Part shown: in pieces, positions 12,588-64,000 of the stretch | Numbering within the stretch: position 1 is the first letter of the stretch | Layout: each line of letters starts with the position of its first letter | Assembly: GCA_943704425.1 (NCBI GenBank) | Contig: CALSCP010002159.1 | Location: 62,001 to 126,000, forward strand | Direction of reading: 5' to 3' | From: Ministeria vibrans ATCC 50519 | Lineage: Eukaryota > Protista > Filasterea | DNA: 64,000 nucleotides | Position numbers and translations under genes: made by a program | The notes under the pieces: generated by a model | What the model was told of the DNA's origin: nothing | Databases searched by the model: none | The model's input: only the letters and a program-made list of their open reading frames with translations

Positions 12588-13951
12588 CTACTGGTCGACT
12601 TCGTCGCTGGCCATTTTGTCCTTGATGCACAGAAGGAGCCCCTTGAAGCCACGGTACGCGGCCGACGACTTTTTCTACGCAGAAACGCATATGAGGAGAC
12701 GTATAAGGAGGCGAATGAGGAGGGAGAGAGAAAGTGAGAGAGCGCGAGGGCTTACGTCGTCTTGTCCTCGCTGTGCGCGCTTCTTCATGATGTCAATAAA
12801 CTCGCGATGCGACAGCTCACCGTCCGCTACAATAGAGAGGAGAAGATAAGACACGAGACATACTAAGGATGAAGCACACACATATACGTACAGTCCTTGT
12901 CGAAGAGGTTGAAGATAATGTCGACGAGGTTGTCAGTCAGCTGCACATTGGCAACGGCCACTGCCGAGCGCTTGAAGTCATCTGATGTGACAAAAAGTAG
13001 AAAGAAAGTAACACAAAAACGCGGTGTAAGAGAAAGAGAGAGATGAGTGGCAGAGCGAGAAGGAGAGGGGAGAGACCTTTGGAGACGGAGGCACCAGCAG
13101 CAGAGTAGAGGCGCAGGGCAGCATCCACATCGTCAATGGCCTTGAGGAAGGCCCCCATCGACACCCACTCGGCCTTGGTCACTCCCTGTAGTGCATAGAC
13201 CCAGTCAGTCATACATACATGCAGTCACATGCACACACACCCCTATGGGCGTCCCTCTTCAAGAGCCTCTCAATATCTCAGCTTAATGTGTACCTCTTGA
13301 CCTTTGCGCTTCTTTGCTCGCTTAATGTAGTCTTTATTGTCGCTCAGGTTTGAGTACGACAGCAAAAGCGACGCAAATTTGGCTTCCTACTCCAAAAAAA
13401 TTACATTATTCAAACGCATCTAACTTTTGTGTTTTACCTTCATCTTTCCATTTGTCTGATTCCGCTCAAACTCAATTTCCATCAACTCATTCTGCAAATC
13501 AGCCACAAACCTGAATCAAAGTGCGAGAGAGGAAAGGAAGCAAAGTGAGAAGGAATACACAGAAACAAAGTAAGAGAAGACAAAGAAACAAAGAGAGAGA
13601 GAGAGAGAGATACAAAGTGATTGGGATAATAATGTAGAAAGAGAGAACAAACAAGGGAGACAGCGATTTTCTTTAGTGGGTTTGTCCGTGTGTGGGTTTC
13701 AACCGTACTTGCCAAATGTCTTAAAGTCAAGATGGGCCTTCCCCTCTGCACCAAAGAAGAAGTTAAGAAGGGGCGAGCGGGCAAGACGCTTGCGGACGTC
13801 ACGCACTAAAGAGCGAGCGAGAGAGAAAGAATACAAACACACACACACAGATAGTGAGTGATTGATTGAGTGAGTGAGTAGCAGTACCGCGTTCGCCCTT
13901 GGTCGCGGCACTTGTCACCACCTGCTGCACCCGCCCAAACTACACACACAC

Positions 13952-14010
<59 letters not shown>

Positions 14011-15400
14011 CGCTTAAGCACGGACATACATTCTGTTTCCTCTTGTGCTCACTTCCTTGATGTCGACTGTTCCGTTTCCGTCCAAATCGAACATCTTAAA
14101 GGCAATCTCGTACTGTCGCACGGGCGCTACTCACAACACAGCGCGTCAGAGTCACGGACGTGCACACACACACACTCTCTCTCTATCACTTTGGTTCTTT
14201 CTTTTTCTCTTTCTCTCTCAAAATATAATTACTTGAGATCAGGGAGAGCACAAAAAGATACTCTGAAAAGTCAAACAAGCCGTTTTTCGAGTTGGCCAGA
14301 AACTCGGTCGACGACGAGCGGGTCTTGAGCTTGATTGTTCGATCGTAAGCCTATATACACACGAAGCCACCTTTAGACATGGAAATACACAAATTCACAA
14401 TCATGTGATTGACACACACTGAGTCTCACTCTCTCACTCTCTCACACGCACTCTCCATCGCCATCTCTTACGTCTCCGTCAATTTTCTCAAACTGATCCA
14501 TTTGCAGGCCTTGAAGGAAGGAAGAAAGGAAGAAGAAAAGAGAACACGGGAGAGTCAGAAACACACACACACACAAAACACACTCTTGGCGCGCCCTCGC
14601 GTCACCTTGCGGCTGCGTCTCGCCAGGGATGATGGCCCGGATCAGGTCAGCGGACGTCATGTACTGTTGGCCATCAATCTCCTTGGTCGCAAAGTAGCGG
14701 AATACTCGAGCAGGCGGGCTGTGCATTCGAATACGATGTTCGTACGCGAGAATCTGCCCAGTGCATACACACAAGAGAGAGAGACAGAAGAGAGAAAAAA
14801 AAACCAAAAACACTGAGCTGTCAGTCTACTCTCCACAGCACACAGCCCCCGGAGGCAACCCTTGGCCGCACCATCGCACTGTGCACACGGCCCGCTGCGT
14901 CGATGCGGCGTATTTGCCCCCACAACAGCCCAAAAATCGAAAAAAAATATAAAAATCACCTTTCGCTCTTTGAATTTCTTCTGCTTTGGTGAGTCGTCTG
15001 GTTCGTCAGCCGCATCGTCAGACTCGCCATCGCCGCAACTGACGCTGCCCAGCGAGCTCCCTAATGCAAGGACCGTCACGGCGGTCGCTGCCGTCGCCCA
15101 GCGCATCTGCAAACGCAGAGACAGCGAACGAAGCGTAAAAAAAAACACAGAACAACTTTCTCTCTCTCTCTCTCTCTTTCTCTGCGTTGGCCACGGGAGC
15201 GGCGGACACCACGAGCGCACAGCATCGTCGCCAACGCAGCGGATGGGGGAGGGGGCGTGTGCAAGGCGTACGTTTGACGAGGAGGAGTGCGCAATCTGAG
15301 AAACCGCTCGAGAACTTGACAGCCTCAGGCAGGGACGGGACGCACTGCGCGCCGACGCGAGGGCCAGACGGTAGGGCAGTCGTGTGCTGGCTCTCAACAT
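12588..15400 (-). CDS. MICU1: Mitochondrial calcium uptake protein 1 (EF-hand regulator of MCU)
   Basis: Arg/Ser-rich mitochondrial-type presequence MLRASTRLPYRLALASARS. Motif FKERK|ILAYEHRIRMHSPPARVFRYFAT..YMTSADLIRAIIPGETQP. EF hands (FDLDGNGTVDIKE; DGELSHREFIDIMKKR). Confidence 0.92.
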
Positions 15401-15733
15401 GGAGTGATCAATAATAATAATAATATAATACAATAATTAGTATAATTTTTAGTTTTACTTATGTGAATTTAGAACACGATGAACTTATTTGACGAAAGTT
15501 AGTACGTGTGTGACACTCATGTGAGTTGAGAATTCAAGAAGCGACACTTAGAGATGTAGATTTTCGTCACACTGCTCGTTTAAAGGCATCTGAGATACTC
15601 AAAAGAAGTTCGACAACTGAAAACTACCCAACACTCACTCGCCTGTGAAATGAGTGAGTGCACTCTTCCATAAGATTGCCATCTGCGCAAATCAAGCTAT
15701 CCCTCCGTCACAAACAAAAAACCTTCTTTTTTT

Positions 15734-16686
15734 TTACACATGTCGCATTAAGAGATAGAGACGAGAATCAAGTGGCATCTGTCTCAGATGCGTTTCGCCT
15801 CCATGCAATCTCATCAGAAGTCCCCCAAAGCTCACAAATACAGAGCTACACAGACAATACGCTCAGTCCCACAGTACATGTACTGCGCACGTATCTTACA
15901 TCTTCTTATGGCCTTCCTCCTCAACCTTATACACCTTTCCACCCATGACGTACTCTGTGGCGCACACAAGTAGAAAGACAAGTCTTAGCAACAAACACAA
16001 AAGCATCTCTAGCACTCACAACCACACTCATGCATGGTTGTTTCGCCGTGCATCTCACCAAATTGGTCCGCTCTCGACGGTCTGTCGCTCTGGACGTACT
16101 CGTCTCCGTCGGGCGTGCCATCCCTGCGCAGTAGAGAGACGCAATAACACAACAGTCAGTCTCCAATTTGGCGTCGTCTCAAGCCCCTTTCCCTTCGTAC
16201 TCGTTGAGCGTGTTCGCCAGCACAATCGTGAACTTCTCGTTGACCTTGACCGGGTAGATTTGCGTGTTGACGTCGACAATCATCTCTAGCGTGTCCGACA
16301 AAACCCGAAAAAGCACAATCCATTTCAGTACGCTGTGCCTCTTTCATGCCACCACACTCCTCCATAGAGTCATACCAATCTCATAGTTCTCGCTGAAGCA
16401 TTTTAATCGCGACACTAAAGGCAATCCGGAAAGTGAGCGTTTTTTTTTATGCGTTTTTAACGTGCGACTCTGAATGGAGCAGAAACCAAGCACATTCAAC
16501 AGCTTGCGGTAGTCACGCAGACACAGAACGACCCTCAGGCACACCGGCAGGCGCAGCAGCAGCCTCCCAGGGTCGCTCCCGAGAGACACTCTCTTTCTCT
16601 CTTTCTCTCTCTCTCTTCGCTTTACCCCGATCAAACTTGGTGTTGTCCGCGTCTTTCACTGTGAATTGGTCCTCGAGAAAGTCCAT
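15734..16686 (-). CDS. POLR2H: DNA-directed RNA polymerases I/II/III subunit RPB8 (RPABC3)
   Basis: Spliced: MDFLEDQFTVKDADNTKFDR|VSRLKCFSENYEI|EMIVDVNTQIYPVKVNEKFTIVLANTL..SRADQF|EYVMGGKVYKVEEE..|SVFVSFGGLLMRLHG..SRLYLLMRHV*. Confidence 0.93.
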
Positions 16687-17174
16687 ACTACGACGCGCAA
16701 AACGAACTGCAAAATGAGAAGAGTCGACTGATTTTAAGTTTTAAATAATGATAATAATTATTATTATAATAATTCGTTGTTTTACAAAATTTGAGTGTGA
16801 AAAAGTTTACTCAACAAGAAGAAATAATAATACACCGCTTACACCATTGACTATTCACCAATCACCATTGAGTATTGACTGACAGGCCGCACATGCCACA
16901 GATTACAGCACTTCGGCCTAAACTCCCCGAAGTGGAGCGCTTTAGTTCATTTATTTGATGATCATCTGTGTCTAAAATTTATTTTCAAGTTTGTTTCATT
17001 GATCAGCTCGAAATTCGAAACGATCTTCTTCCTCTTCATCAACACCATAATATAACAATATAATTGTAATAATAGTAATAACAATAATAATAATGAATAA
17101 AATATAAATATTTTATTATTTTAATCTCTCCAACTCGCTCGATGTCTCTCTCTCTCTCTTTCTCTCTACATCTC

Positions 17175-20100
17175 TCACACAGTATCTTCTACAACCCCCT
17201 CAGACTCCGCTACAAAGGAGAGCGGCCTGGCGGAGCGGACGGGCGCATTCCGCGTCGCCGCCATGTAGCTGGTGTTGCGCATTGCGTTGTTCTGCATCCC
17301 CCCATCCAGTTCGTACTCCTCAACGACCGACTCACGCGACACACGACGTGAGTCTAGCATCGCCACCTCCGACTGGCTCACATCCGAATGACGCTGCACA
17401 AATTTGCGCTCTGAGTACGAGCGACGACGGTGCCGCACAAGCAACACCGTACCAATCAGCAGCATCAAGAGCACAAGGGGAATCACAACAAACACTGCGA
17501 CAGGCACACTCGATCCCGAACCCTGTCCGCTGCCGACCGTCGTCCCATTCGTCTGGCACTGCGCACCCGTGAACGAGCCCACACACACACACGTGTACGT
17601 GTTGACGCCGTCCGTGCACGCCCCGCTGTTCTGGCAGGGGTTGGGTGCACAGTCGTCAATGTTGACCGCACACTCACTGCCGGTGTACCCACTCACACAT
17701 GTGCATGTATACGCCGATGCGCCGCCAGCACACGTGCCCCCATTCTGACAGGGCGAGCTGGCACACTCATCCGGATTGCCCGCAAACGCGTAGCCACTGC
17801 CCGACACCCCTCCACACGACTGTGACGATGCACAGGTAAGCGCGCGACGACGTGAGGTGCTCTCGGCGCCCGCCAGTACAAACGACCCAGACGAATCCGA
17901 CTTGAAGTACAAGAAGACGCCCGAGGACGAGCCAAGACCGTTGGGCGCACCCACATTAAACGCCTTGTTCGCGGTCGCCGACGCGGGACTCAGACTAATG
18001 CGAATCATCGCGTTGCTTCCGTGCAACACTCCCGAGGGATACGCCGGTGCACCGCCCGAGCCCGGCGTCACCTGCTCAACCGTAATGGTTACGTCCGTAC
18101 TAAACGTCCCCGGATACACCTGCACGCTCACAGTACCACCCAGCAGGGTCACCGACTGCTCGCCACTGGCCGCTGTAACCAAAAGTCCCTCCTGAGCACA
18201 CTCGTCTCCGACAAAGCCCGACGCACACGCACACGTGAAACTGGTCACACCGTCCGTACACACTCCACCGTTCTGGCACGGATTGGGCACACAATCGTTC
18301 ACGTTCACCTCGCACCGTGTACCCGTGTAGCCACTTTTGCACGCGCATGTGTACAACGCTGCGCCATTGCTGCACGTCCCGTCGTTCTGGCACGGCATTG
18401 ATGCACACTCGTCCACGTCCTGGTCACACTCGCTGCCAGTCCACCCTTGCGCACACGTACATGTGTGCCCGGTACTTACCGACCCACATGTACCGCCATT
18501 TTGACACGGCATCGACACACAGTTGTCCGTCGTCGCGTCGCAAACGGCACCCGAAAAGCCGGTGCCGGTGCAGTCACATGAAAACACATTTGGCGAGGGA
18601 GTGCTACACACGCCGCCGTTGACGCACGGCGACGACGCACACTCGTCAATATCCACCTCGCACAACGCGCCCGTGTAGCCAGAGTTGCAGGTACACGTGA
18701 ATCCATTCGCATTGTTGTTGCACACTGCACTATTCTGACACGGACTGGACGCGCACTCGTCAACGTCCGACGAGCACACAGTGCCACTGAAGCCTGTGTT
18801 CGCACAGTCACACAAAAAGCTGTTCACACCGTCGCTGCATGCGCCTCCATTGCGACACGGCGACGATGCACACTCATCCGCGTTCACGGCACACCCAATG
18901 CCGGTGTAGCCCATGACACACGAACACGAGTATTGGTCCACACCATCCACACATGTCCCTCCGTTCTCGCACGGATTCGACGCACACTCATCAATGTCCA
19001 CCGCACAGTCGCTGCCGGTGTAACCGGCCATGCACGCGCATGCGTGCCCATTCACACCATCAGTGCAGGTGCCGTCGTTTTCACACGGCGACGACGCACA
19101 CTCATCCACGTTCACGGCACACCCAATGCCGGTGTAGCCCATGACACACGAACACGAGTATTGGTCCACACCATCCACACATGTCCCTCCGTTCTCGCAC
19201 GGATTCGACGCACACTCATCAATGTCCACCGCACAGTCGCTGCCGGTGTAACCGGCCCTGCACGCGCATGCGTGCCCATTCACACCATCGGTGCAGGTGC
19301 CGTCGTTTTCACACGGCGACGACGCACACTCGTCAATGTCCACAGAGCACTGCACGCCAGTGTAGCCAGCAGCACACACACACGCGAATCCGTCGACATT
19401 GTCGGTACATGTCGCACCGCTTGCGCACGGGCTCGACGCACACTCGTCAATGTCCACAGAGCACTGCACGCCAGTGTAGCCAGCAGCGCACACACACGCA
19501 AATCCGTTGACATTGTCGGTGCATGTCGCACCGCTTGCGCACGGGTTCGACGCACACTCGTCAATGTCCAAAGAGCACTGCACGCCAGTGTAGCCAGCAG
19601 CACACACACACGCGAATCCGTCGACATTGTCGGTACATGTCGCACCGCTTGCGCACGGGCTCGACGCACACTCGTCAATGTCCACAGAGCACTGCACGCC
19701 AGTGTAGCCAGCAGCACACACACACGCGAATCCGTCGACATTGTCGGTACATGTCGCACCGCTTGCGCACGGGCTCGACGCACACTCGTCAATGTCCACA
19801 GAGCACTGCACGCCAGTGTAGCCAGCAGCACACACACACGCAAATCCGTTGACATTGTCGGTACATGTCGCACCGCTTGCGCACGGGTTCGACGCACACT
19901 CGTCAATGTCCACAGAGCACTGCACGCCAGTGTAGCCAGCAGCACACACACACGCGAATCCGTTGACATTGTCGGTACATGTCGCACCACTCGCACACGG
20001 GCTCGATGCACACTCGTCCACATCGTCGTCGCACGTCACACCCGTGTAGCCTGCTTGACATGTACACGTGTGTCCGTTGACAACGTCCACACACGAAAGC

Positions 20101-59678: not shown

Positions 59679-60974
59679 ATCGGCATCAATCGATTAAAAT
59701 GAAATTGAGTAGTGATAAATGATAATCTTTTGTGTGATTTTTGTGGTGGTACGTCCATCTCAATTTATTGGAGTCAGTCAGGTACACAAGGTTGCCCGAT
59801 GACCGGTTGCCCGCGGTGTGACTGGTGTCGGCGCTCAGTCACTCAGACACTCACTTGGCAGAGTGGTAGACATTTAACAGAAATCGGATCAATTTGAATG
59901 ACAATAAACTTTCATCATAAATATGTCGACACAGCACTATGACCTGCCACTGTTCTCCCATGTTACCTCTAGAGTTTCGGTTGAGTTTGCAAGGCGGTCT
60001 GGCTGTGTCTTCGCGTGGTGACTGTATCATTAATAAATGGGATGTATTCTTCTTCTTCTTCTAATTTATTATGTGTATGTTTAGTGAAGGGGTTCTGTTA
60101 ACTCTTTCCACTCGGAAACGGAACGGCGACGGAATGTGACGCAGAATCGTCCGTCGACATTGCAGGCCTGTGTACATCAGAGCGATCGCGGCGACTCCGC
60201 GTCTGAAACAAACAGACATGACAGCCATGGGGGATCGAACACTTCTGACCATTCGGGGTTGACGGAGGGTTGACGGGCGACGGCGTATTCAGGGAAAATG
60301 TCTTGAGGGTGATGGAAGATTTTCGGAGACGGAAGATCAAAAGATAGACGATCTCCTGGGGAGGACTTCGATGCGAAGAAAGTTCAGCTGGCACAGAGAC
60401 AAAGATGACACGGCGTGTGGGAGAAATCGGCAATCGCAAGAGACATGGCAAGCACCAAACCTGATGGCGAGGCGGATGTCGACCTTCGGCAAATTGCATC
60501 AGATAGACCGACAGGTGACGAGGAAGTTGGTCGCCTCGACGCAATACAGTTGGCCTGACATCAAACGGTCTGAAACTGATCAGAGGAATCAGGAGTAAAC
60601 ACAAAGAAAGAGAACATGACCCTCTCTGCGGAATTTCTTCGAGCCGCTGCGAGTAGCGGATTTTCAGGAACTATAATAGTTATCGGCCATTTGACATTGA
60701 TTGACGTTGAAAAAGCTATCAACATTTTCGTTGCTTGCTTCTCTAATGACTGCCAAGGCTAGCTCCTCGGTCATTCCCAAATTCCAAGTGCAACAAACGA
60801 AAATAAAATTTATAAAAGTAAATAATGTTGTCTTCTTATTCGAAAGCAGTGATGATAAAACTTACAATAGTAAAGTAATTAATATCATTCTTATAATATT
60901 ATAATTAACACGACTAACAGCTAATTAAAAAAATATATATATAAAAATGATTATTGATTATAATTATACCTCCG

Positions 60975-63900
60975 TCACAAAAATGACGAAGAGAGATCCT
61001 CTAACTCTGCGCCAAGCGATCGCACAAGTGAGCCCTTGTCAATCTCCGCCCTCATATACTGCACCAGACGGCAATGCAGCTCGGTGAAAGTGGGCCTCTG
61101 GCTTGCATCCTTGTGCCAGCAACTCAGCATCAGCTGATGGCAGGCGTCAGGACATTCCCGTGGTCGATCCAGTCGCTTCCCTTCACGTAGGGTTTGCGCC
61201 AAACTCTGAATCTCTAGAGACTTGTATGGGCGCACGGTGCCAAAGGTCATCACCTCCCACGCAACCACTCCAAAAGACCACACGTCCGTCTTGATCGAGA
61301 ACTTGCGGAACTCCAACGACTCAAGAGCCATCCAACGTACAGGGAGTCTGCTTCGCGTCTTGACGCGGTAGTAGTCATCGTCATCCATCCGGCGTGACAG
61401 TCCAAAGTCAGCCACCTTGATCACTGAGCCATGGCCAACGAGGCAATTACGAGCAGCCAACTGGCGAAGGAAAGGAAGAAAAAAGAGAGGGGCGAACTAA
61501 ACTTAGAAAACAAACATCATCACCATCACAAGGCTTCTTACATCGCGATGAACGAAAGAGAGAGACGAGATATACTCCATGCCTGAACTGATTTGCATCA
61601 ACATATTCAACTGCTCAGCATAGCTCACGTTCAGAGCCGCGCAGGTGACACACAGGCGCAAAAAGTTGCGCAAATCACCGTGAGGACAATGCTATACGCA
61701 AATAAGAGGAATAAGAATAATAATAATAATAATAATTATAACAAAAGTCTTTTCTCATGGGGCTTGGTTTGGTGTGTACCTCAATAATGATGAGATAGGG
61801 ATCATTGACAACGCACACACCCACTAGTCCGAGAATGTTCTCATGATGAAAGGTAGCGAGAAGATGGGCTTCCGACAGGTAGTCTTCGCGCTCCCTTGCC
61901 TTCGCCCCATCTTTCAGCGTCTTCACAGCCACATACTTGGGATTCTTCCCATTCACATCAGTTGCACTTGCCTTGAGCACAACTCCAAATTCTCCTTTGC
62001 CGATTTCTTCGATAAAGGATAGTCGCGTGCGGTCAAAATGAAACGCGTCCACCTTGCTGGGGTCAAGTGGGAAGTTGTAAATGTTGCTTGAAACTGAGTC
62101 GGCGTTGTATATCGCGACCTCAGGAGGTAAGTCAACCCTCACGGTTTTGCGACTGGCTGTACCATACTTGGCAAACTCATCTTCATCCTCGAGAGCACCG
62201 TTGCTCTGTCTGAAAGGATTCATGGCGCGAGAATTCGGGCGCTGACCCCGCGCCGATATTTTGATTGTCTGGTAGATGTTCTCCAAGTCACCGGTGCGTA
62301 CCTGTCTCTCGTACAAGTCATAGTCGTCATAAGCTTCCCCAACGGTCTCATGGCAAACCTGTGGCGCCCGCAACGCGCCATACTCGGCACTAATTGGTCG
62401 ACGATATTCCTCGAGATTCACATAGGCTGATTGCGACATGCTGTCAGAGAGAGGAACGTGATTAACATTCTCGTACTGCACAGAGGCTGTCGCGGTGGAC
62501 GCTGCGACAGATTGATAGATATCATCAAGCGCTGGTATGCTATCAGTCGCGTCGTACACGTGAGACCCGCTTGCCGAACCGCCAGGCTGGGACACCAACT
62601 CGTCCAATGATGGAGGCGCCGTACCAAGGGTACCATAAGCTGACGTCTCTTGTGGCCGAGAAACGTTTTTTGCGCTGAGTAGATTGTTGATGTCGTCACT
62701 TGAGATACCATACAAACGGCGAAGATCTTCAATATGCGCCTGCTGCTCTGGGATTTCGGTGAGTACTTCCGCAGAGTAAAAAAATGGCATGGCCTTCTGA
62801 GAGAGAGAGCCTTTCTGGGCCTCTCGCGACTTGTGAGACAGATTCCTTTCGTGAAATGTCACTTTATCTTGCGCGCTGTGTAAAAATGAGAGAACCGAAA
62901 CTGGTCGTATTGGATTAATATCGGCAGTGCGATTCATATCGGCAGTGCTAATCAGTTCGCTCTTGTGCGATTCGATCATCGGTATAGAGATTTGTGATAT
63001 CGAAACTAAATCGTGACGAGTCCGCCCGAAACGCTTGCCACGACCACGACGTCGCCACAACACCACAATCACAATCATCAGGAGAATGCCCACGGCAACG
63101 GCAACAATTGCTCCAATGATGGGCAAGCTCGACGACGAGCCCGACGACTGACCACCCGTCCCACCACCTCCGCCGGGCTGATCCGGATCCAACGCTTCGC
63201 TGTCCGCCATCACCGCAAGCGCATAGGTACCCGTCTGTCGTGTCAGGCACGTTACACTCTCGCTGCTGCCAGCAAGGCGCTTCGAGCCTGTCGGTGTCCA
63301 TGAACCACTCGTCGCACTCCAGCGCACACAACTGATTGTTTGGCCCCCGGACACACTGCTGACCGTCGTGTTGCTCGTGATGGGCAGTGTCAATTGAATG
63401 CCGTACTCATCCATGTCGACAGGCACGCCCACTTGTGGGCTAGCAGTGGCACGCAGCGACACATCGTAGTAGTTGGACATAATGGTGCGTGTCGACGCGA
63501 CCGCCTTGGGATTGCTCGTGAACACAAGCCAAATGGCGGTCAGGTCACAGCTCGAAGTGGTCGAGCAGCTCGTCACCGACGACACCGTCTCAATGAGTTC
63601 ATCCGCGTCAAAGAGAGCACGCGTATTGCACGTGCCCGAGTGCGACAGGGCACACAAACCCGCATAGTCAACAACATTGTTAAAGGGCGACGTTGCATAC
63701 GCAATGGCGCGTCGTCGGCCGGTCGCTGAGATCGCAGCAGGTGTCACCGTGCGCACACCCACAAGCAGTTGTGTCATGCCCGCATCCACTACCAGAGACT
63801 TCACGCCCGGTGAGAGAGTAGCGCCCACGCTGGCGCCCACATCAAGCATGCTCGCAATCACGGCACGTGAGGTCGTTGTCATTGTTTTCGACGATGACGA

Positions 63901-64000
63901 CGAAGCACGCGCCAACTGAAGACTCAGTGGTCGCATCAGTTGACCGGCCATGTCCGTGTCAAATGGCGACGCACCGCTCACCTGCCATGTGTCCGCATCC
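60975..64000 (-). CDS. Receptor tyrosine kinase with polycystin/REJ-type GAIN-GPS-like ectodomain (5' part beyond the window)
   Basis: The reading frame is open to the window edge. GPS-like CVRWSATSGSWTPTGS..VTCLTRQTGTYALAV; TM LPIIGAIVAVAVGILLMIVIVVLW-RRR; kinase IGKGEFGVV, VAVKTLK, HENILGLVGVC, HRD|LAARNCLV, KVADFGLSR, DYYR, LPVRWMALESL. Confidence 0.93.

Follow-up and report, generated by a model that had tools for sequence, protein, structure and literature searches.

A probable receptor tyrosine kinase with a polycystin-1-type REJ-GAIN ectodomain in Ministeria vibrans

The window (the 64,000 nucleotides of contig CALSCP010002159.1 from Ministeria vibrans ATCC 50519 analysed here) can with good confidence be read as holding, at its end, the 3′ third of a gene that is intact and transcribed and that codes for a single-pass receptor tyrosine kinase (RTK). 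The ectodomain and the transmembrane (TM) helix of this receptor probably come from a REJ-GAIN receptor and the cytoplasmic half from an RTK. The gene lies on the minus strand, as do all its features given below. A single open exon of 4,131 codons encodes Sushi and EGF modules, the REJ domain, the GAIN domain, the TM helix, the juxtamembrane region and the kinase N-lobe. The ectodomain comprises more than 4,000 residues, passing through a long Sushi array, EGF modules, REJ and finally GAIN. A preliminary description, made from the letters of the window, had proposed an RTK with a polycystin-1-type GAIN/GPS ectodomain, and this proposal is borne out by the REJ neighbor, by paralogs with a recognizable GPS motif, by the fold of the beta half and by the reading frame shared with the kinase.

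The REJ domain is located wholly outside the window (window-equivalent positions 64288–65547, G000:C2159:126288-127547), in the upstream sequence where the preliminary description had advised looking for it. It matches PF02010 with E = 2.9e-32 and 112 bits over profile positions 10–448 of 452, in agreement with a genome-wide scan, and it is directly N-terminal to GAIN in the same exon. The GAIN domain has 363 residues. Its helical subdomain A, as delimited on the structural model, begins at window-equivalent 64287 and lies within the window only with its C-terminal part (63856–64000); subdomain B, a beta-sandwich corresponding to model residues 154–372, was placed at 63199–63855 by VIA-align and Foldseek. 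The region 63210–64000, whose translation had been suggested for structure prediction, covers the domain only in part, because the domain reaches past the window end to about 64287. The final strands of GAIN-B are formed by a GPS-like motif at 63199–63330 (assigned by paralog alignment, matches to PDB profiles and hhalign), and 24 residues separate the end of the last strand from the TM helix; this linker (63127–63198 in the translation) has a pLDDT of about 30 in the model. All amino acid strings that had been quoted for this region were found on the minus strand where they had been placed: the block C-V-R-W ... T-C-L-T-R-Q-T-G-T-Y-A-L at 63199–63330, F-T-S-N-P from about 63522, L-S-P-G-V-K-S-L-V-V from about 63813 and R-R-R at 63709–63717.

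The GPS-like motif retains the first Cys, both Trp and the third Cys, while Cys2 is replaced by Ser and Cys4 by Thr. That these two had been lost together was confirmed by the alignment, in which several paralogs likewise lack both; in latrophilin-1, Cys2 and Cys4 form one disulphide (PMC3321182). The Pfam GPS profile (PF01825) does not match the gene's own copy up to E = 1, and a search of PDB sequences with the GAIN region as single sequence gave only a Gly-rich chance match. The homology of this copy is instead based on paralogs and profiles that bridge it to canonical GPS motifs. Thus, ten REJ-to-TM segments of the genome align in register with the first Cys, the second Trp and the third Cys invariant. 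Two of the paralogs, on contigs C2773 and C1778, pass the Pfam GPS threshold (33 and 29 bits) and have REJ at an equal distance upstream; the paralog on C2773, a canonical member of the polycystin-1/REJ type, combines REJ and GPS with a PLAT match that is weak and stays below the threshold (19.7 bits, cut-off 23). A profile built from the family matches in the PDB the GPS of ADGRE5, ADGRF1, ADGRG3, ADGRG1, ADGRL3 and BAI3 (best E = 3.8e-7), and hhalign aligns the degenerate trio, to which this gene belongs, with the His-bearing subgroup with 95% probability and E = 3.6e-8. Judged from the ten-segment alignment and from hhalign, the GPS-like pattern is more than chance.

In this copy the autoproteolysis triad H-L|T is replaced by Q-T-G (63229–63237), which in a column-for-column alignment stands under the H-L-T of the C2773 and C1778 paralogs and, across the paralogs, exactly under H-L-T, H-L-S or H-T-T. 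The triad had thus been read correctly in the preliminary description: both the general base (His to Gln) and the nucleophile (to Gly) are lost. With Gly at the position of the nucleophile and Gln at that of the His no self-cleavage is expected, and on this reading of the residues it is most likely absent. The final strand, T-Y-A-L-A-V-M, resembles the tethered-agonist strand, for which the consensus T-x-F-A-V-L-M has been given (PMC12716839). In comparison with a close paralog on contig C313 (the C313 twin), dN/dS amounts to 0.19 in GAIN-A and 0.17 in GAIN-B (about 0.18 overall), which indicates purifying selection. That a cleavage-dead GAIN is under purifying selection speaks for a structural function that does not depend on self-cleavage, and the domain is probably a rigid, selectively maintained membrane-proximal stalk.

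The two chains of a GPS-cleaved receptor could be mimicked if, along the lines of the convertase cleavage suggested in the preliminary description, a proprotein convertase or Kex2-like protease cut within G-R-R-R, the R-R-R of which (63709–63717) is a possible basic processing site near the start of GAIN-B, and if the products were then held together by the beta-sandwich. The motif is invariant in the three members without H-L-T, namely this gene, the C313 twin and a 29%-identical paralog on C1992, is absent from the paralogs that keep the His and sits in the model at the start of a strand after a predicted 8-residue loop. The minimal furin motif, however, is R-x-x-R, which is not present here since P4 is Gly; the pLDDT at the motif is below 50, so that its exposure cannot be read from the model; and with only three sequences constraint cannot be told apart from common descent. 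Such processing is thus considered unlikely, and the uncleaved stalk is preferred.

As to the fold, the preliminary description had recommended structure prediction followed by Foldseek, and the result was that the beta half resembles solved GAIN domains best. The AlphaFold model of the GAIN region is poor overall (mean pLDDT 48.7), but subdomain B is modeled with about 15 strands over residues 174–370 and with pLDDT values of 60–84 over residues 230–375. It shows the twisted beta-sandwich typical of GAIN-B, for which around 13 strands are the rule, the last five forming the GPS motif. The top eight Foldseek matches are all GAIN domains (best E = 7.7e-9). In a search of 48,161 chains that is independent of Foldseek, GAIN domains were also ranked first, with Z scores from 12.1 to 8.7; VIA-align gave a Z of 12.1 for CD97 (3.3 Å over 160 residues), 11.4 for Gpr126, 11.4 for BAI3 and 11.0 for CELSR1. 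Subdomain A is predicted to have six helices (from H2-29 to H147-162), which all have a pLDDT below 50 and find no specific structural match, and structural support is therefore confined to subdomain B. It should be noted that ZU5 domains score against the model with Z values of 8–9, so that the fold alone cannot tell GAIN-B from ZU5; the case for GAIN is made by the fold, the GPS motif homology and the REJ neighbor taken together.

One could still argue that a generic ZU5-like or other beta-sandwich follows REJ and that its GPS-like letters are coincidental, since Pfam GPS is silent on this copy, model confidence is low, ZU5 domains reach the Z scores just mentioned and modules with a ZU5-like H-F-S motif are common beside the membrane in receptors of the same genome. 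Against this stand the in-register alignment with paralogs that pass the GPS threshold and have REJ equally far upstream, the hhalign result, the lead of about 3 Z units that GAIN domains have over ZU5 in both structural searches, and the roughly 150 helical residues before the sandwich, which are like GAIN subdomain A and unlike ZU5. A coincidental sandwich is in consequence very improbable, and the domain is taken here as GAIN.

The chain crosses the membrane once. The TM helix (63055–63126) is the sole 19-residue hydropathy peak above 2.4 in a scanned stretch of 2,774 amino acids. It is followed by a cytoplasmic juxtamembrane region of about 345 amino acids (62020–63054, from the translation) with at least 14 tyrosines, including those in Y-E-N-V and Y-V-N-L. 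The kinase N-lobe (61780–62019; PF07714, E = 1.6e-16, profile positions 2–83) forms the 3′ end of the giant exon, lies in the open frame of the ectodomain and contains a G-K-G-E-F-G loop, V-A-V-K with the beta-3 Lys and the alpha-C Glu. After intron 1 (61692–61779, 88 nt, GT..AG) a 150-nt exon (61542–61691; E = 1.1e-8, positions 83–127) extends from the hinge to the H-R-D of the catalytic loop, where intron 2 (61461–61541, 81 nt, GT..AG) separates H-R-D from L-A-A-R-N. The last exon (60975–61460; E = 1.1e-49, positions 128–258) encodes the C-lobe and the tail, with L-A-A-R-N, D-F-G, a Y-Y activation loop and P-V-R-W-M-A in its translation, and ends with a stop codon at 60975–60977. Searched separately, the three exons tile PF07714 from position 2 to 258. 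To judge from these motifs (H-R-D-L-A-A-R-N across intron 2, D-F-G, V-A-V-K and P-V-R-W-M-A), the enzyme is a group-A, metazoan-type tyrosine kinase in which every catalytic motif is kept; in the P-x-x-W-x-A-x-E motif A-L-E takes the place of A-P-E.

Both introns are supported by transcripts. Spliced RNA contigs, assembled from runs of two studies, join 60922–61460, 61542–61691 and 61780–63151, the 150-nt exon appearing in them as a piece of its own and adjoining 61780–63151 directly. Intron 2, which was also predicted independently, is absent from contigs of runs X1, X4 and X5 and retained in DNA run X6; in the DNA run both introns are retained, and splicing is as predicted from the sequence. 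From the 3′ end the RNA contigs reach 63151, i.e., above the TM helix. They break at 63122–63165, and no single contig runs from GAIN into the kinase; continuity between the two is deduced from the uninterrupted genomic frame, which runs from GAIN to the kinase N-lobe without a stop codon or a shift of frame, and from 30-nt overlaps of contigs. The preliminary description would have been contradicted by transcripts that separate ectodomain and kinase. The transcripts agree with the two being joined in one mRNA, the contigs being spliced as predicted and crossing the TM helix.

The origin of the gene can be traced by comparison with its relatives in the same genome. Up to the stop-transfer sequence W-R-R-R, the C313 twin matches the gene with 91% identity over 1,079 amino acids, and beyond it the two are unrelated, protein identity falling from 76% to background after W-R-R-R; with blastn the identity is 85% over window 63047–63999 and there is none below. 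Position 63047, the lower limit of this similarity just past W-R-R-R, is the presumed fusion point, and it is bridged by contigs, of RNA as well as of DNA, that do not differ from this copy. No kinase is found within 5 kb downstream of the C313 twin, nor did tblastn find one downstream of 11 other REJ-family loci, that on C425 being followed up to the contig edge. The juxtamembrane region is unrelated to the tail of the C313 twin and 38–51% related to that of kinase sisters on C1708, C1664 and C313:85-86k. The closest kinases are 71–76% identical and are parts of EGF-rich RTKs with a ZU5-like H-F-S juxtamembrane module. Because the twin shares ectodomain and TM helix and has no kinase, and because the closest kinases are found on EGF-rich receptors, the gene appears to be a chimera in which a kinase-less REJ-GAIN receptor supplied everything up to and including the TM helix and an EGF-rich RTK the cytoplasmic half, with the joint immediately behind the helix. 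That the kinase was gained here rather than lost in the twin is inferred by parsimony only. An artefact of assembly or gene model that joins two neighboring or paralogous genes, for which one could cite the existence of a paralog 85% identical in nucleotides, the breaking of the contigs near 63122–63165, where both copies resemble each other, and an N run further upstream within the Sushi array, is hardly conceivable, since contigs of three studies (RNA in two, DNA in the third) cover 61780 (or 61749) to 63151 and match this copy at every position, crossing the 63047 boundary and the TM helix where the paralog differs at several codons, and since the frame is open without a stop codon from GAIN through the kinase N-lobe.

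Database searches revealed no ortholog. Phmmer with the GAIN region gave no match among 1.84 billion representative proteins; the in-genome twin was missed as well, and the proteins of this genome are therefore apparently not in that library. A word-indexed homolog search with REJ plus GAIN gave no match, and with the juxtamembrane region plus kinase N-lobe it gave only two tyrosine kinases of a generic kind, of which one resembles ROS and the other carries an ANF-receptor domain, and no ortholog. A look-up in the ESM Atlas yielded no usable match. REJ, GPS or GAIN on an RTK was found nowhere in the literature and databases searched; earlier figures in kinase surveys may show one.

With polycystin-1/REJ proteins (PKD1; few-TM sea urchin SpREJ, PMC1934368) the gene has in common a large modular ectodomain ending in REJ and a GAIN/GPS at the usual distance after REJ and directly before the first TM helix. 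It differs from them in that its GPS has neither Cys2, Cys4 nor the H-L-T triad, and in that a tyrosine kinase takes the place of PLAT and of the 11-TM or channel-like body: after the TM helix no PLAT match was found, and instead of a multi-TM body (up to 11 helices) there is only one hydrophobic segment. For this reason the gene is not filed under the PKD1 family despite the shared REJ-GAIN module.

The best structural matches come from the GAIN of adhesion GPCRs (latrophilin-1, 4DLQ; BAI3, 4DLO; CD97; Gpr126; Z 12.1–8.7), GAIN being treated as a hallmark of adhesion GPCRs and polycystin-1 proteins (PMC3321182). Common to both are a beta-sandwich, Cys1, both Trp and Cys3, and a hydrophobic last strand; the six helices of the adhesion GPCR layout are in this gene predicted with pLDDT below 50. 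Uncleaved cases exist there too, e.g., BAI3 in heterologous cells. In adhesion GPCRs, however, GAIN is followed by a 7TM bundle, whereas here a single TM helix and a kinase come next, without a match to 7tm_2 (PF00002). The activation mechanism of adhesion GPCRs is not applicable as such, because a 7TM core that could receive a tethered agonist is absent, as is a cleavage site.

The ectodomains of unicellular holozoan RTKs are known for frequent turnover by duplication and domain shuffling (PMC4342544; PMC3753549). Shared with these receptors are the group-A kinase with H-R-D-L-A-A-R-N, the single TM helix and an ectodomain of shuffled modules of animal type (Sushi, EGF). An RTK bearing GPS, REJ or polycystin is mentioned in neither PMC4342544 nor PMC3753549. 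Here, unlike there, both parental families of the shuffle can be recognized in the same genome. The RTKs with the ZU5-like H-F-S module resemble the gene in apparently having an autoproteolysis-type beta-sandwich just outside the membrane and coupled to a kinase. They keep H-F-S invariant, whereas this gene has a REJ-linked GAIN, one TM helix and a dead cleavage motif. The likeness of the sisters' module to ZU5 is a lead only: ZU5 matches are weak (E at least 0.014), the model has a pLDDT of 50 and a profile search of the PDB found nothing significant. A further gene of the genome, on C155, combines GPS, 7tm_2 and a complete kinase within a single frame; adhesion GPCR-tyrosine kinase fusions (GPCR-TKs) are known (PMC12716839).

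The receptor probably operates in the ordinary RTK mode, in which a ligand or contact would cluster the ectodomains. Once clustered, the kinases would phosphorylate each other in trans, both on the Y-Y activation loop and in the tyrosine-rich juxtamembrane region; the latter may then dock SH2 or PTB proteins. A mechanosensory or adhesive role, as put forward in the preliminary description, is conjectural. Force sensing has been proposed for polycystin-1 and for adhesion GPCRs. If the REJ-GAIN base were a working force sensor coupled directly to the tyrosine kinase, which we regard as a rather remote prospect, a pull on the Sushi rod of about 4,000 residues would distort the uncleaved GAIN/REJ stalk or unfold part of it, and this would shift the spacing or orientation of the receptors and thereby switch on phosphotyrosine signaling. 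A force sensor of this kind, if true, would be a type of mechanoreceptor without an animal counterpart that arose from a traceable gene fusion.

With both parental families surviving in the same genome and with a junction that can be located to a few codons downstream of the TM helix, the gene would be a clean natural example of the formation of a new RTK. It would mean that REJ and GAIN, together with the TM helix, can be transferred as one block to a tyrosine kinase. Since the same genome holds this gene, the RTKs with the ZU5-like H-F-S module and an adhesion GPCR-kinase fusion, the pattern suggests that, in this lineage, receptors of different classes may exchange membrane-proximal sandwiches of the autoproteolysis type as building blocks.

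On the minus strand of a eukaryotic genome assembly of 29.7 Mb, a giant open frame of 4,131 codons runs from position 136070 to 123780 of contig C2159, starting well past the end of the window, which covers C2159:62001-126000, and ending at window position 61780. It encodes, in this order, an N-terminal array of Sushi repeats (PF00084 in three pieces, E = 2.7e-54, 1.2e-24, and 2e-27), calcium-binding EGF modules, a Pro/Ser linker followed by some 360 residues that match no Pfam model, a REJ domain (112 bits and E = 2.9e-32 to PF02010, covering profile positions 10-448 of 452; 64288-65547 in window numbering extended past 64000), a GAIN stretch of 363 residues, a Gly/Ser linker, a single transmembrane (TM) helix (63055-63126), a juxtamembrane region rich in tyrosine and about 345 residues long (62020-63054) and, at its end, a tyrosine kinase N-lobe (positions 2-83 of the PF07714 profile). 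Because a run of 526 N, a gap in the assembly or else withheld sequence, lies within the Sushi array of this giant exon (C2159:130450-130975; L003:8450-8975 in the numbering of the excised locus), the repeat count and the exact length of the protein are uncertain. Of the tyrosines in the juxtamembrane region, which number at least 14, two stand in Y-x-N contexts (Y-E-N-V and Y-V-N-L) of the kind recognized by Grb2-type SH2 domains. About 9.5 kb beyond the open frame, on the same strand, there is a strong GPS match (61 bits, C2159:145552-145671), which probably belongs to a separate GAIN-bearing receptor gene.

The kinase domain is completed by two more minus-strand exons, delimited by two sequence-predicted GT..AG introns, of 88 nt (61692-61779) and 81 nt (61461-61541). 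The middle exon (61542-61691, 150 nt) ends in H-R-D and the last one (60975-61460) begins with L-A-A-R-N; searched singly, the three exons match consecutive stretches of PF07714 (2-83, 83-127, and 128-258). Contigs from sequencing runs of two studies (X1 and X4 in the first, X5 in the second) cover the pieces 60922-61460, 61542-61691, and 61780-63151, which are adjacent in record coordinates with zero differing letters, exactly as the predicted splicing demands. A further run, X6, is a DNA run, since its contigs retain the introns. The spliced contig extends beyond the TM helix, to 63151. Similarity to a paralog on contig C313 coincides with a break in the contigs at 63122-63165, from which they restart with 30-nt overlaps to and past 64000; none of the contigs of X1, X4, X5, and X6 spans GAIN and kinase by itself. 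In the genome there is neither a stop codon nor a frame change between the two, and both RNA and DNA contigs are identical to the gene across the point where the similarity to the paralog ends. The open genomic frame, the spliced contigs and this copy-identical bridging speak against separate mRNAs for ectodomain and kinase. The kinase translation shows the G-K-G-E-F-G loop, V-A-V-K, the alpha-C Glu, H-R-D-L-A-A-R-N, and D-F-G, followed by a Y-Y activation loop, P-V-R-W-M-A-L-E, D-V-W-S-F-G, and C-W ... R-P-T-F. No catalytic residue is missing, A-L-E stands in place of A-P-E, and from these motifs the kinase would be expected to be active.

The GAIN stretch is not recognizable on its own: the Pfam GPS model is silent for this copy at E up to 1, a single-sequence search found no relevant PDB sequence, and phmmer against 1.84 billion representative proteins gave zero matches. 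Its relatives are found in the same genome, in which a profile scan detected 13 REJ loci and at least 58 loci above the GPS threshold. At 11 of the REJ loci one TM helix follows 330-480 residues after the REJ domain. The loci on C2773 and C1778 combine REJ with a GPS (33 and 29 bits, respectively) having the full motif C-x-[YF]-W ... W ... G-C ... C-x-C-x-H-L-T; the former (13446-17267, minus strand; L011:4946-8767) is a polycystin-1-like candidate with REJ (E = 3e-56), GPS with H-L-T and then a TM helix, its PLAT match being weak and sub-threshold (E = 0.0015, 19.7 bits versus a cut-off of 23). On C642 and C141 the second and fourth cysteines (Cys2, Cys4) are both gone and H-L-T or H-L-S is retained; C2369 and C569 have H-T-T, C1992 has S-T-G, and the gene under study and its C313 twin have Q-T-G. 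The REJ-linked GAIN paralogs form a graded series in the motif before the TM helix. The stepwise order of decay (L007:1656-2915, L010:2182-3441, L014:6651-7910, L015:6919-8178, L013:1968-3227) is joint loss of Cys2 and Cys4, then H-T-T, then S-T-G or Q-T-G, and the series could serve as a natural set for asking which residues the fold requires.

Ten aligned sequences agree without exception at Cys1, the second Trp, and Cys3, and their triads fall into one column. The preliminary description had read a paired loss of Cys2 and Cys4 and a Q-T-G in place of H-L|T from this one copy, and the paralog alignment bears out both. In latrophilin-1, Cys2 and Cys4 pair with each other (C834-C820) in one of two conserved disulfides of the GAIN domain (PMC3321182), and their joint loss is one that a preserved fold would allow. 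With a family profile that includes the canonical GPS members, the top PDB matches were all GPS of adhesion GPCRs (ADGRE5, E = 3.8e-7; ADGRF1, 5.6e-7; ADGRG3, 1e-4), with ADGRG1, ADGRL3, and BAI3 next. Because of these canonical members, the degenerate trio (the gene, its C313 twin, and C1992) was compared separately with the other six by hhalign, in which the 86 columns up to the GPS aligned at 95% probability (E = 3.6e-8). A likeness to the tethered-agonist strand, whose consensus is T-x-F-A-V-L-M (PMC12716839), is seen in the last strand, T-Y-A-L-A-V-M.

AlphaFold2 run on the ten-sequence alignment yielded a model that is weak overall (mean pLDDT 48.7), with residues 230-375 at pLDDT 60-84. 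Its layout of six helices followed by about 15 strands would match the six helices and 13-strand sandwich of GAIN domains (PMC3321182). The best eight Foldseek matches are GAIN domains, among them BAI3 (E = 7.7e-9), BAI2, CELSR1, GPR110, latrophilin-3, latrophilin-1, and CD97. VIA-align gave Z scores of 12.1 for CD97 (3.3 Å over 160 residues), 11.4 for Gpr126 and BAI3, 11.3 for BAI2, and 11.0 for CELSR1, and the ranking was the same when 48,161 representative chains were searched independently of Foldseek. Lower down follow ZU5 domains (Z 8-9) and FIIND (about 6). The modeled fold alone would thus indicate only the GAIN-B/ZU5 class, and GAIN is preferred to ZU5 on four grounds: its higher Z, the homology to GPS, the helical part in front and the REJ neighbor. 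A GAIN sandwich is therefore predicted, as all three comparisons rank GAIN first, with subdomain A modeled at pLDDT below 50.

In Q-T-G the general base His is replaced by Gln, the P1 Leu by Thr, and the nucleophile Thr/Ser/Cys by Gly; since all three are replaced, the established GAIN autoproteolysis should not be able to run at this site (PMC3321182). The domain is not decaying, dN/dS against the C313 twin being 0.19 for GAIN-A, 0.17 for GAIN-B, and 0.11 for REJ. Processing could instead occur at R-R-R within G-R-R-R, which is suggestively invariant in the three members lacking the His, one of them only 29% identical, and missing from the other members; however, P4 of this site is Gly and the structure model is unreliable around it, and such processing, proposed in the preliminary description, is kept as an unlikely rival. 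The findings support a genuine, transcribed receptor tyrosine kinase (RTK) of REJ-GAIN architecture, whose GAIN stalk is predicted to be cleavage-dead yet is maintained by selection.

The C313 twin (C313:113276 to about 125500, L005:5277-9998, minus strand, open frame of 4,062 codons) shows 91% identity to the RTK across the compared 1,079 residues, through REJ, GAIN and TM helix. The value is 93-97% up to and including REJ, 81-83% for GAIN, and 76% around the TM helix, falling to background directly past the stop-transfer W-R-R-R. The 400 residues of its tail match no Pfam domain, bear no likeness to the cytoplasmic part of the RTK, and have no relative found elsewhere in the genome, and there is no kinase within 5 kb downstream. 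Synonymous divergence is lowest before REJ (0.05), higher in REJ (0.29), and highest in GAIN (0.45-0.56), a gradient that points to an older duplication in which gene conversion may have homogenized the distal part. The nearest kinase exons, on C1708 (76% identity), C1664 (75%), and C313 near 84.5k (71%), belong to genes that also have the juxtamembrane region in common (38-51%) and in which, as in the RTK, the frame leaves the kinase domain at the same position. The ectodomains of these sisters are EGF-rich (27 EGF stretches in C1708) and end, before the TM helix, in a conserved all-beta module of about 150 residues with an invariant H-F-S (L017:2348-2857, L018:2387-2896, L019:2374-2883, L020:2706-3215, L021:4745-5254). 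The model of this module is of low confidence, its best matches being weak ones to ankyrin ZU5 domains (E at least 0.014). The examination of 11 other loci of the REJ family found no kinase at any of them. By parsimony, the gene is most likely a derived chimera of two receptor families of the same genome: ectodomain and TM helix would come from the REJ-GAIN family and everything past the helix from the EGF/H-F-S RTK family. As Q-T-G is common to the gene and its twin, this state would be older than the fusion. An element of about 100 nt is 85% identical between window 59968-60067 and L012:5771-5882 (C1778); in both places the stop codon of a gene of the REJ-GAIN family lies upstream of it, at a distance of a few hundred to 900 nt.

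The claim of the preliminary description, an RTK with a polycystin-1-type GAIN/GPS ectodomain, is upheld by the REJ neighbor, the paralog alignment, hhalign, the structural matches, and the single frame. The PKD1/REJ family is defined by REJ, GPS, PLAT, and 1-11 TM segments (PMC1934368); the gene has the REJ-GAIN-TM base in common with it but is not filed there, because PLAT and the multi-TM body are absent. Nor is it an adhesion GPCR, because it is without the 7TM domain. Adhesion GPCR-tyrosine kinase fusions, which are 7TM receptors whereas the present protein has one TM helix, are reported in PMC12716839 from choanoflagellates and sponges only. A gene on C155 (C155:3-7730, L022, minus strand, one open frame of 2,576 codons) encodes such a fusion, with EGF repeats, Laminin_G_3, a receptor L domain, GPS (27 bits), a secretin-type 7tm_2 (E = 7e-29), and the whole of PF07714 (E = 5e-73). 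GAIN is thus tied to a tyrosine kinase in two ways in this genome, via 7TM and via one TM helix. In the literature searched no mention of REJ, GPS or GAIN on an RTK was found, an earlier depiction in kinase surveys being possible, and external protein searches with the regions of the gene were blank. Lineage-specific RTKs with shuffled domains have been described for unicellular holozoans (PMC4342544, PMC3753549), and the gene is an RTK of this kind. The REJ-GAIN RTK may serve Ministeria vibrans in adhesion or clustering, or in force sensing.
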